Positions 34,601 to 38,605 of a DNA stretch of 64,000 nt are shown in pieces (positions within the stretch are counted from its first letter, which is position 1; each line of letters starts with the position of its first letter). The notes below the pieces were generated by a model. The model searched no databases. It had not been told where the DNA came from and saw only the letters and a list, made by a program, of their open reading frames with translations. Source of the DNA: Lepidodermella squamata (Eukaryota; Animalia; Gastrotricha). Location: positions 1,426,001-1,490,000 of the forward strand of contig JBLDXI010000010.1 of assembly GCA_047495785.1 (NCBI GenBank). Direction: 5' to 3'. The position numbers were made by a program, and so were the translations under genes.

Positions 34601-36522
34601 ACAGGCGTTTCCTGTATAAGACGGTGGACACTTGCAGATATTGTACCCGACGCAAGTTCCTCCGTTGGCGCAACCCATGGCACAATACACTTTTCATCAT
34701 GAAATATTAATAGGGCGCATTATATAGTCTGAGAAAAACATACCAGAGAAAACCTTGCAGGTTTCGCGTACTTGAATGAGCTGATCGACTGTTAGAGCTG
34801 CTGAATGAAACGACACGCACGCGAGCTTGACATCAGACGTCTTTTCAGCCCTCACCGTACCGAGACGAACGGCGGGATAACTAATAAGTATAAAAAGTTT
34901 AGGAACATCTTAAAATACGGATTCCCGAATCTATACCGATAGCCCAGAGTCATGACCTCAGTTGTCACAGCGTAGTTCGTTAAAGAGTTCACTGCACCTA
35001 CAAAGTTTGAGCCGCAGAACAACTGAATGGTATTGGAAGTTCCGGAATTCGTGAAAACCAACGCGACGAATTGCCACTGCCCCGTATTGATGCAAGGCTC
35101 AGTGTACCCTCCAGTATGTGGGTTCATCGGTGTGAAATAGATCTGATTTCCAATGGCAGTGTTGTGTGCATGCGTTCCGAAAGTATTCGCCGGGTCCACT
35201 GTCCAGTTATTGAAAGCGAAAAACGGCATATCCCCAACTGTCACGAAGTTTATGTAACCGGCCCAGGTCCATGACGAAGCGCCGCGAGACAGTGTGGGTG
35301 ATTGAATAACTATCATCCTACCAGCGTTGATATACACTGCTGTATTCGGCATGAGAAATGGCCCGTTTACATATACGGGTGTTGCAGGCGTGGAAACTCC
35401 GTCAATTTTATTGGTCGTTTTAGCATCACTCGCTGCGTAACTGCTCGTCAATGGCCAGTAACCAATCAAACTGGGCAAGCTGCTTAATTTAGTGGCGATT
35501 ACAGTTGCATCAATAGAAGCAGAGTATACTAATTTTACATCATCTTCAGCTCAAAGATATAGAGTAATTCAATATACCTAAATTGCAGGTTTGGCCGTAG
35601 TAGGGCGAGGGACATTTGCAAATGTTGTAACCAGCGCATACTCCACCGTTAACGCAGCTGTTTGAAGAGCAATCCGCTGTAAAATGAATGTGCTAGTTTG
35701 CGCGATACTACATATTAAGATTGACTCACTGTAAAAAGCCCGACAAGCGTCTTTAACTTCAAGCATTTCATCGACAGTTAGTGCTCTTTTGAAGAACGAA
35801 AGGCACGCTGTTCTAGCATTTGCCGTACCTGAACCTGTCGTCCCGGGAGAGTCTCTGAAATAATGCTATCTAGCTCTATTAATCACAAATGCTGTCTCAT
35901 ACCTTCCACCGACGTACACCCTGTTGGTGTAAATCATCAGAGAACGAGGAATCGGCATTGCTGTGATCGTTGAAAAAGTGTTGCTACAGAAAAACTTGAC
36001 TGTGTTTGATTGACTGTCGTACACTACACCGATGAATTTGATTCCACTCACGTCGCAGAACTGTGTGAACCATTCAGAACCAGTTGGGCCGTTGATGCCC
36101 ATTATGTTACTTCCTGTTTGCATATAATAGAATCCGTAGGTTGCCGGAGCAGGCGGATCGTCCCATTCAAATAAGGGCATGTTCGACCTAGCGTCAGTAT
36201 CCAGCCATTGAGTGAAGGTCCACGACGATCCGTCATTGAAATTAAGCTGGGCGTTGTTGATAAGAAACCAATAACCGGATGAAAATCTGAAAGCAGCGCT
36301 GCCCTGGCCGTAAACACCATTATCATTCGCTGTCACAGATCCAGTCGAAGAAGCGCCGTTAATCTTGTTGTTGTTCTTAGCATCTGTTCCGAGGTATGTA
36401 GAGTCCAGGGGCCAGAAGGCAAGGCAATACGGAAGCGAGGTCAAAGTTGCGTAGGCCACATCGACTTCACAGTAGGCGGTGTTGAGGAAAATTACAATTA
36501 TAATGACGACTGATACTTGCAT
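28691..36522 (-). CDS. Paralog D, complete, chimeric receptor (5' E-like, 3' B/C-like; 8-EGF stalk)
   Basis: ATG at 36522 (MQVSVVIIIVIFLNTAYC). Approximate exons 36522-35902, 35854-35731, 35677-35578, 35528-34937, 34879-34744, 34689-34590, 34546-33766, 33693-32996, 32942-32850, 32799-32235, 32181-31963, eight EGF exons in 31912-30770, then 30716-29921, 29869-29684, 29629-29413, 29358-28691 (TM VLAILAFFIGIIVCL). Confidence 0.9.
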
Positions 36523-37333
36523 CGCTTACTTCAGTCTCAATAAAAAACCGTCTGTCTTGGGTGGATACTGTACAAAATCTGGGTCTATTGGCCATTATAC
36601 TGAAATCTTGTTAGCAGCGCCGCGGTGAATCTTAATAATTTATATCCTCGCAAAACAATAACAAATTACTGGGAGCACTTGCAAAAACACAAGTGGGGCA
36701 GGCTGTGAATGGTGAATCACGCGGGTTATAAAGAAAAATCAATAAAACCTACGTACGTCGCCCTGGCACCAGGAAGATGAAAGATTCATTATGTCTGCGC
36801 CAATTCCTGGTTTGCGATAATATGACAGGTAACAAAATACAGTTTTCAAAATCATGATTTTGCTGCGAGCTCAATTAATTTCTCTCCTTCCATTTATTCA
36901 GAATAATCTTCTATAATATAAAATCTAAATGCTTCATCGTCAGGGTGCGACAGTACAGGGGTGCTGGGGTGTCGCAACACGTAGTAGCGTAGTCGCGCCT
37001 CGCGCCGCAGTTTCATTGCACTTTCATTGAAAAACGGTTGAATAAATCGCTAAGCCATCGCCCCTGACGGTTTCTCCAACGGCCTTGAAACTCTGAGACG
37101 GGGTTGATATATTCATATTTTTATATTCCTTATAATATCGTTAACACCATAAGTTTCTCTGGTATAAATGGCGAAGCCGCAAAATTGTTCATAAAAGACA
37201 GTAATAAGCTATACTTGAGTTCGTATTCGGCGGTTTTACTTTCCTCATCCCATCATTGCAAACATGTTTTACTACTACAATCACTCTCAATGCATTCTCA
37301 CATATATGAACCAGTCATTTGCCGGAAGTTAAC

Positions 37334-37691
37334 TTAGAGTGCGGCTGCTGCTATGGCCGGCGCGTTTGCAATGGCCTTCTGGGCAACCTTTTTGCCGATT
37401 TTCTTTATCTTACTGCCGATTTTCTTGATGGAGCGCTCGGCCTCTTTGGGTTTCGACTTAGGCCCATTCACTTCTTTTTTGGGTGTTTGAGCTCGTTTTG
37501 GCGATACATGATCTTCCTTGAGAGGTCCGTTGGGACGGGCCTCTCTAATGTCATGGTAACGAGCTGCCTCCTCCTCCTCAGCATATACAGCGACTACAGC
37601 CTAATAGAGCAAGAAACATGAGAAATGCAATTTTATGAGTGTTGGGCTTGAGGCAAACCGCTAGCAAGATGACAATCAGCAATTTGTTCAT
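37334..37691 (-). CDS. Two-exon secreted prepropeptide (99 aa) ending in a cationic amphipathic cecropin-like peptide; putative antimicrobial peptide precursor
   Basis: Exon 1 37691-37659 (MNKLLIVILLA), 58-nt GT...AG intron 37658-37601, exon 2 37600-37334. Product: MNKLLIVILLAAVVAVYA-EEEEAARYHDIREARPNGPLKEDHVSPKRAQTPKKEVNGPKSKPKEAER-SIKKIGSKIKKIGKKVAQKAIANAPAIAAAAL*. Splicing rebuilds a clean signal peptide ending V-Y-A. Confidence 0.8.
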
Positions 37692-37773
37692 TGCGGGAGA
37701 ATAAAAGTCGAGTCAAACTGAAATGATATTTTGCAGAAGATAAGAAAATGAAATTTTACGGCGATTGCATTTG

Positions 37774-37780
37774 TTATATA
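37774..37780 (-). promoter_or_regulatory. Candidate TATA box (TATATAA) for the peptide gene
   Basis: TATATAA on the minus strand about 85 bp upstream of ATG 37691. Position is the only support; no transcript evidence. Confidence 0.35.
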
Positions 37781-38605
37781 GCATCCTAAGCGGTTAGCAT
37801 CTGTACAAATTCTGTTATTTTTCGTTTGTTTTGTTGCGTGAAAAAGGAAAAGAAGAAAGTTAGCGGCTTACTGGTGTAGTTATCCGTTTGGAATCGTCGT
37901 TGTCATGCCCTGTCAGCTCGATGGTTAGGTGCTAGAATGCTCAGCTGGTGTATTTGGCTTTCTGACAAAGTATTACCTCTCGAGCTAAGCCCTTACGATG
38001 CGAGTAATTAAGCAATTCGAAAATACGCAATGAAGCGATCATAAAATAATGTAATGGAAAAGGCAGAGCCATCGCTTGTACACAGGTGGCCTTTCCACTC
38101 ACTCGGCGAAGCCTACAAACTCCGTTGTAGCAAGTGGTCGAAGCGTCCAAGCACCCCACTGGCGGCGAAGAGACAATGTTACGGCGATTGAAAAGATTTT
38201 ATATCTATAGCATCCTTGGCACCTGTGCAAATTTCATCCACGTTCATCGTTTTGTCTGGTCACGATATTTTTATTAAGTTTTATTAATTAGCGGCGGGCT
38301 TTCATTTTTCATTTTTTCAAATTTTTCAACTTGAAATTTCATAGGTTTCTGATATTTTTTTGATCCAACAAAAAATACCACCGTGTCTGCCATAGTCTCA
38401 TTGACCTCTGTGTCAATTTTTTCGAGTTGGAAATAAAAATGACGACGTATTGTAATTCAATCAAACCGGCCGAATTCGTATTATCCGCCAAAACTTACTC
38501 AGGCGGAGTGCGTGATTTTTGTGATTTTTGTCGCGAGGAAAAACCAGAAAAGCTGAATCCTGATCTGAATGCTGAATGCTGAGCCTCTAAAACCTTTTTC
38601 TTAAG

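Follow-up and report, generated by a model that had tools for sequence, protein, structure and literature searches.

Insect cecropins are made with a very short pro-piece and typically carry a signal for C-terminal amidation and, close to the N-terminus, an aromatic residue. In the Ascaris peptides, an acidic pro-piece lies on the C-terminal side. In frogs, preprodermaseptin precursors join a conserved signal module to variable peptides and employ an acidic spacer, Lys-Arg processing and, frequently, amidation. The Hydra peptide arminin, the activity of which has been proven, corresponds to the cationic C-terminal part of a precursor whose N-terminal half is anionic. Spider linear cytolytic peptides are released from both simple and multi-peptide precursors at a 'processing quadruplet motif', defined by Arg at position -1 and Glu at -2, -3 or -4 before the mature peptide (PMC7889660). 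Here, we describe a two-exon gene on the (-) strand of a 64,000-nucleotide stretch of the gastrotrich Lepidodermella squamata (assembly GCA_047495785.1, contig JBLDXI010000010.1, positions 1,426,001 to 1,490,000). This whole stretch is referred to as the window and corresponds to C10:1426001-1490000 of the searched genome (121.2 Mb in 151 contigs, approximately 44% GC). The gene lies at positions 37334 to 37691 of the window and, in the explanation that we hold with a little more confidence than doubt, encodes a secreted precursor from which a membrane-active helical peptide would be processed at a PKEAER motif, as one member of a lineage-restricted family of cassette-like genes.

Gene structure, transcript and predicted peptide

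All features of the gene are on the (-) strand. A TATA box (TATATAA, 37774-37780), common to the whole family, is followed by the conserved element AATCGCCGTAAAATTTCA and by a 5' untranslated region (UTR) of approximately 47 nt (37692-37738), whose start near 37738 was inferred by homology from the complementary DNA (cDNA) contig of a paralog. The coding part of exon 1 (37659-37691, with the ATG at 37691) encodes the first 11 signal-peptide residues, MNKLLIVILLA. It is separated from exon 2 (37334-37600) by a 58-nt phase-0 intron (37601-37658, GTTTGC...CTATTAG) with GT..AG borders and a pyrimidine-rich 3' end, which was read from the sequence and from the paralog contig. Exon 2 translates as AVVAVYAEEEE...KPKEAER, followed by a 32-mer and a stop codon. 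The spliced precursor is therefore a 99-aa product, made up of an 18-aa signal (MNKLLIVILLAAVVAVYA), a 49-aa pro-region and the 32-mer (SIKKIGSKIKKIGKKVAQKAIANAPAIAAAAL).

As read from the sequence, the signal starts with MNK as its n-region, continues with a hydrophobic core of 13 residues and has small residues at -3/-1, and its end (AVVAVYA, 37580-37600) is predicted to be cleaved at VYA/EEEE. The pro-region (37433-37579) runs from EEEEAAR to KPKEAER, its PKEAER motif lying at 37433-37450, and the predicted mature peptide (37337-37432) is followed directly by the TAA stop (37334-37336), without a preceding C-terminal Gly. Within the part encoding the 32-mer, a 21-bp tandem duplication (37388-37429; 86% in the repeat search) gave rise to the heptads IKKIGSK and IKKIGKK, 18/21 bases being equal between 37388-37408 and 37409-37429. 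The 3'UTR of about 110 nt (37220-37333) contains the variant poly(A) signal AGTAAA at 37235-37240, with poly(A) addition near 37226-37220. The open reading frame (ORF) listing holds nothing at the gene except a 45-aa fragment starting with GTG and a 37-aa read-through of exon 1. A preliminary description of this locus had proposed the two exons with their 58-nt intron, the 18-aa signal, the EEEE start of the pro-region, EAER as its end, the duplicated IKKIGxK heptad and a gene missed by the ORF track, and each of these elements was found again at the positions given.

Transcription was followed in three public sequencing runs (X1, X2 and X3), all of which are stored as contigs. In run X1, in which the SMART cDNA oligo is present as a loose end, contigs were 100% identical to 37248-37578, a span made up of 3'UTR and exon 2, with the pro-region specific to this copy; no X1 contig covered the intron, the promoter or the downstream flank. 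Since exon 2 and the 3'UTR are covered and intron and flanks are not, we read run X1 as cDNA. A contig of run X3 was 100% identical to 37220-37417. Further, a 514-nt X3 contig carries a loose end of 21 T at 37226, corresponding to a poly(A) tail. It covers 37226-37453, has 136 other letters in place of 37454-37559, returns with 37560-37599, omits exactly 58 nt after 37599 and resumes over 37658-37738. As its 30 extra letters equal 10 extra codons, this contig represents the spliced messenger RNA (mRNA) of the paralog on C56, whose precursor has 109 aa compared to the 99 aa of the window copy. Beyond 37738 it holds only a short G-run and no 30-nt leader, and trans-splicing of the window gene mRNA was accordingly rejected. 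We have very little doubt, based on these observations, that the locus is a real, expressed, two-exon gene for a secretory pre-pro-peptide.

The 32-mer contains eight Lys and no Asp, Glu or Cys, in agreement with the composition given earlier, and has a net charge of +8, a pI of 10.85 and a monoisotopic mass of 3200.02 Da. Its hydrophobic moment (muH) was 0.72 for residues 1-18 at 100 degrees (P ~0.001 or less against shuffles) and 0.56 for residues 1-22 (P 0.005), with shuffle means of about 0.25, and the moment peaked at 95-100 degrees, which is the pitch of an alpha-helix. Cecropin A, magainin 2 and melittin, which serve for scale only, have values in this range. Mean hydrophobicity (H) of the 32-mer was low (0.10), while the tail NAPAIAAAAL, with Pro at residue 25, was hydrophobic (H 0.55) and not amphipathic. 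When modelled from the single sequence with AlphaFold2, residues 51-87 of the exon-2 product formed one continuous helix without a hinge, with block means of the predicted local distance difference test (pLDDT) of 85-96 up to residue 80 and of 72 at the tail; the pro-region was coil (pLDDT 52-62), and the helix starts at the motif. The amphipathic basic N-terminal helix that had been proposed was thereby borne out at the level of the model, confidently over the N-terminal 18-22 residues. Being 32 aa long, secreted, charged +8, Cys-free and amphipathic in its modelled helix, the peptide has the properties of the linear cationic alpha-helical antimicrobial peptide (AMP) class.

The gene family and its putative processing motif

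The search of the genome for paralogs, which the preliminary description had suggested, revealed a family of approximately 10 loci on five contigs (C10, C56, C13, C42 and C9). A DNA search with positions 37200-37800 returned one full-length relative (C56:130750-131375, 81% identity) and nine more loci that matched only the first 230-250 nt (72-84%). This conserved part comprises promoter, 5'UTR, exon 1, intron and the start of exon 2, the remainder being unalignable. A pattern made from exon 1 found 10 loci in the genome at three or fewer mismatches, compared to none for the reversed-pattern control. All family members carry a GCTATA(A/T)AA box and a AATCGCCG element approximately 85 nt 5' of the ATG, and their coding module consists of MNKLLIV(I/F)(L/F)LA, a 56-60-nt phase-0 intron, AVVAVYAEE(EE), a region rich in Lys, Pro and Thr, a processing site and a payload. 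Nine intact loci, the window gene and eight others, have the complete set of features, from the promoter to a PKEAER-type site. A 29-nt, 76% copy of the family promoter core (AATTTTACGGCGATTG...TTATA, which the gene itself has at 37752-37780) was also seen at 38175-38203. It lies 423 nt 5' of that core and could be the remnant of another promoter of the family.

The payload, by contrast with the constant module, differs from gene to gene. It reads SIKK(I/V)GSK... in the window copy and at C56:131271, IFGKIGKFADKVVKK... at C42:4625186, and GIIKGLANLAHK... and GILKGLAKVAKQ... within one precursor at C42:4620987. At C13:4512298 and C56:135240, an acidic ESER linker comes after SGFFGGLKKLYNK... 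and leads to another segment prone to form a helix. These two long members (233 and 267 aa, within C13:4510764-4513798 and C56:133706-136740) have two PKEAER sites, 20-residue repeats rich in Lys, of the type DLVKKAAEKVKASG..., and a SGEEPVESER linker whose last residues make up a second Glu-x-Glu-Arg site. The C9 member (approximately C9:2589187-2589658, (-) strand, within C9:2588124-2591158) encodes five to six tandem copies of GSMSKNVRNPKHLQG(S/N)PKEAER in 66-bp payload units. The amphipathicity of the first 18 residues was significant for six of the 11 distinct payload types, and nearly all types contain 22-28% Lys. Decayed copies were found as well: at C13:4490168 the donor GT has changed to GC and the frame is closed, at C42:4719631 the frame is truncated after 16 codons, and C56:130177-130220 is an exon-1-like relic (MNKVLVVILLT) without a donor.

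All intact members that carry the motif have PKEAER or EAKR at the boundary of the payload, with the variants KEAKR, NEAKR and ESER, the long C13 and C56 members having extra ESER sites, and the motif also lies between repeated payloads. A degenerate PKEAER-coding pattern had 12 matches in 121 Mb, 12/12 of which were inside family genes, compared to two matches for the control. Further, the motif is kept at the DNA level, as 24-nt exact matches amid otherwise unalignable sequence. Since the motif borders payloads, separates repeats, is confined to the family and is conserved in the DNA, cleavage after Arg, as had been predicted from the window copy, appears likely from the family comparison. 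In the window site, KEAER/SIKK, position -1 is Arg and positions -2 and -4 are Glu; its PKEAER thus follows the quadruplet-motif rule of spiders.

Outside this genome, no relative was found among 5.8 billion proteins in a word-indexed search with the exon-2 product and a nine-member family profile, nor among 1.84 billion representatives in an exhaustive phmmer search. Neither the precursor and its fragments nor any family member matched a Pfam family, those of cecropins and latarcins included, beyond chance level. With hmmscan, the 88-aa exon-2 product, the 45-aa fragment and the 32-mer had no match to PF00272 at thresholds from E<=1 to E<=10, and a match to CAP18_C at E 1.3 was at chance level. 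Matches of the 32-mer to L-iditol dehydrogenase and 'Heymonin' in a PDB sequence search (E ~1) were likewise rejected as chance, a feature search of the ESM Atlas with two members gave nothing significant, and the peptide strings retrieved only unrelated matches from full-text literature. As regards the cecropin type assigned earlier, the design analogy therefore stands and kinship is not supported. Judged from these sequence searches, the family appears to be an orphan, lineage-restricted one, and the peptide would be a new variety of a well-known kind of effector.

It is possible, although we regard it as rather doubtful, that the constant module has been recombined repeatedly with unrelated payloads and so acts as a lineage-specific 'secretion cassette' for a combinatorial arsenal of effector peptides, with a Glu-x-Glu-Arg rule independent of that of spiders. 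If so, a dedicated Arg-specific processing protease would be implied in Gastrotricha, a phylum without described antimicrobial peptides or a described maturation route of this kind.

Duplication history and receptor neighbourhood

The window copy and its nearest relative are homologous over 37000-38155 and C56:130576-131734 (blastn, 77% identity over 1229 columns), with nothing alignable outside. This 1.16-kb unit contains the gene, approximately 415 bp 5' of the inferred transcript start and approximately 220 bp 3' of the poly(A) site. C56 holds three tandem family genes. Intron and flanks are 89-93% identical between the two copies and, as the pro-regions between them are unalignable, the pro-region was replaced rather than slowly diverged. 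For the two SIKK genes, nonsynonymous (dN) and synonymous (dS) divergence were 0 and 0.18 in the signal region and 0.10 and 0.20 in the mature region, where 25/32 residues are identical and the seven changes are conservative; the hydrophobic tail is identical at 9/10 positions. The mature peptide predicted for the paralog has a mass of 3201.97 Da, compared to the 3200.02 Da of the window 32-mer. We conclude that the window copy is a small DNA-level duplicate that retained its intron and came to lie between two receptor genes. The alternative that C56 and the window locus are simply two haplotypes was rejected, given the homology of only 1.16 kb at 77%, the three tandem genes and the lack of receptor exons there.

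The adjoining LamG-type receptor exon (35866-36522) has about 140 paralogous exons, several with in-frame stops, nearly all of which are on C10 (~0.75-1.8 Mb) and C48 (0.84-0.88 Mb); these exons form a very large tandem array with pseudogenised units. The preliminary description had linked the peptide to putative immune receptors of this array. However, the exon search detected no LamG-type receptor exon near the family loci on C56, C13 (4.49-4.51 Mb), C42 and C9. Because only the window copy sits among receptor genes, and does so inside a dispersed 1.16-kb duplicate, the link looks incidental, and a functional connection to the array was rejected.

Two repeats were noticed at this locus. Positions 38083-38134 are a multicopy element of about 52 nt, of which 38 or more further copies, 88-92% identical, are spread over many contigs; its depth was very high in all three runs, the cDNA-type run included. 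A loose end at this element reads GGTTCAATCCCC, resembling the T-arm of a transfer RNA (tRNA), and the element may be a tRNA-derived repeat; searches with ARAGORN for tRNA genes and against Rfam gave nothing around the gene, including at this position. Further, the depth of run X2 reached approximately 5900 at 36941-36987, compared to ~115-170 around it, which points to a short repeat of high copy number immediately beyond the duplicated unit.

Possible roles of the peptide and known systems

Under the explanation that we favour, the 18-aa signal peptide would be removed from the 99-aa secretory precursor and the disordered 49-aa pro-region would then be cut off behind the Arg of PKEAER, releasing the 32-residue, +8, Cys-free peptide. 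Residues 1-22 would fold as an amphipathic Lys/Ile helix, followed by an Ala-Asn-Ala-Pro kink and by the short, strongly conserved, Ala-rich hydrophobic tail, and the peptide would bind anionic microbial membranes and disrupt them, either in host defence or in the killing of ingested bacteria in this bacterivorous animal. Release of the 32-mer by cleavage after EAER is probable, as predicted from the sequences, and the chances that it acts on microbial membranes are about even.

Several points weigh against this explanation. The peptide and its activity are predictions from sequence and model, and a helix that AlphaFold2 builds from a single sequence is weak evidence. Unlike the pro-pieces of spider, frog and Hydra peptides, the pro-region is not anionic in the window copy (net charge +1, pI 8.4), and net charge reaches +7 to +12 in the family relatives with long pro-regions. 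For the junction 37659/37600, a spliced homologous 58-nt intron was observed in the paralog, and no contig in the three runs spans the junction of the window copy itself. The dN/dS ratio of the mature region is approximately 0.5 on 32 codons, so that the constraint is not significant. Further, in a contig of the DNA run X2 (depth 63), 37197 appears to be followed directly by 37805, which would bypass 607 nt with the whole gene and the TATA box, although the short side of this joint has only 27 letters; the gene-bearing, window-identical contig of this run has a depth of 57 vs. 112 for the paralog-type contig. The joint could correspond to a heterozygous presence/absence variant, and the window copy could be polymorphic and dispensable. 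Finally, the C9 payload is a non-amphipathic 22-mer in five to six copies and two members have payloads of 66-89 aa, and the payloads of the module therefore need not all be antimicrobial.

Among the other explanations, the one that survives best, while still unlikely, is that of a cytolytic toxin or digestive lysin against eukaryotic prey or predators, which would share the membrane mechanism but serve an offensive or deterrent role. The precursor logic is that of spider venom linear peptides, with a site of the Glu-x-Glu-Arg type and multi-peptide precursors, and the charge and amphipathicity of the peptide are also those of cytolysins. However, the 32-mer combines its low mean hydrophobicity with high charge, which usually favours bacterial over zwitterionic membranes, no venom apparatus is known in gastrotrichs, and the mechanism overlaps with an antimicrobial action, from which only the target would differ.

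Somewhat less likely again is a structural or adhesive role, in which the Lys/Ala-rich products of the family would be building blocks or modulators of a secreted material (adhesive-tube glue, cuticle, egg coat or mucus, for instance) and would act by charge and not by killing. Gastrotrichs have duo-gland adhesive organs, the pro-regions of relatives are strongly basic, and the long payloads at C13:4512298 and C56:135240 consist of Lys-rich repeats of the KKAAEKVKASG type. The window product, by contrast, is short, with 32 residues behind a processing motif, its sharply amphipathic helix and hydrophobic tail follow a membrane-active rather than a polymer design, a single 7-residue duplication is the only repeat in it, and it has no Tyr/DOPA-type, Cys or Gly-rich features for cross-linking.

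We give a low probability to the view that the window copy is a young, redundant duplicate without a function of its own, transcribed through the promoter that it carried along and possibly a presence/absence variant. The small size of the duplicated unit, a nearest relative in the three-gene C56 cluster, a window-type depth in run X2 of about half that of the paralog type, the gene-skipping joint and the three decayed family copies would all fit with it. On the other side, frame, splice sites, promoter and processing motif of the window copy are all intact, its mature region has kept 25/32 residues with conservative changes at dS ~0.2, transcripts with its own pro-region occur in an independent cDNA run, and the joint has support from 27 letters only. 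A neuropeptide-, hormone- or pheromone-like signalling peptide from a prohormone-type precursor is the least probable alternative: the C9 member (C9:2589xxx) with its 5-6 copies of GSMSKNVRNPKHLQG[SN]PKEAER has a typical prohormone layout, but the window gene has neither dibasic sites nor an amidation Gly, a +8 32-mer with an Ile/Lys amphipathic face is atypical of receptor ligands, and unrelated payloads among paralogs suit diversifying effectors better than receptor-matched ligands.

No antimicrobial peptide was described for Gastrotricha in the literature searched. If the predicted peptide is cleaved and active, its family would, as far as that literature goes, be the first of host-defence type from this phylum, and a clean natural case of a conserved promoter, signal and processing module driving unrelated payloads. 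The 32-mer and its natural variant, both short, Cys-free and unmodified, are easily synthesised. The locus also exemplifies a whole class of two-exon peptide genes that escapes standard gene calling. The cassette architecture of the family, and the occurrence of a motif of the spider venom type in an animal that is neither related to spiders nor venomous, are more interesting than the type of peptide itself.

Regarding known systems, 'cecropin-like' describes an analogy of design and not membership in the family. Like the cecropins (PF00272; Ascaris cecropin P1-P4), the window peptide is linear, Cys-free and Lys-rich, falls within 31-39 residues and comes from a signal-bearing precursor, and its amphipathic N-terminal helix may, as in cecropins, lead through a kink of the Gly/Pro type into a C-terminal segment of greater hydrophobicity, although the model drew a continuous helix. 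It has no sequence relationship to them, no Trp or Phe in the 32-mer and no amidation Gly, its hydrophobic tail is only ~7-10 residues long, and a 49-aa N-terminal pro-region ending in EAER precedes it. With the Hydra arminins and other restricted AMP families, the gastrotrich genes have in common that they are orphan, lineage-restricted genes of a small aquatic invertebrate that lives among bacteria, for secreted precursors with a cationic C-terminal part; they share no sequence or motif with arminin, and the activity of the window peptide is a prediction.

Frog preprodermaseptin genes are a closer parallel, as they too make up a multigene family in which the signal/5' module is highly conserved and the mature peptides are unrelated or hypervariable, and they likewise consist of two exons, the intron following shortly behind the codons for most of the signal peptide. 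The two families have no sequence relationship, and in the gastrotrich family conservation reaches into the promoter. The spider linear cytolytic peptides (latarcins, cupiennins and oxyopinins) are made from a signal, a propeptide and an Arg cleavage site with Glu at -2 to -4, and the family sites KEAER/S and VESER/T are similarly followed by cationic, amphipathic helices; in both groups, simple and multi-peptide precursors occur, with linkers that reuse the end of the propeptide (PMC7889660). Homology is absent here as well: the gastrotrich propeptides are neutral to strongly basic rather than anionic, their linkers have no clear inverted motif at the start, and some members have EAKR. As the animal is non-venomous and belongs to another phylum, the likeness to the spider peptides would be convergent. 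By analogy, then, the spider venom linear peptides appear to be the closest counterparts in precursor logic, followed by the frog preprodermaseptin genes.

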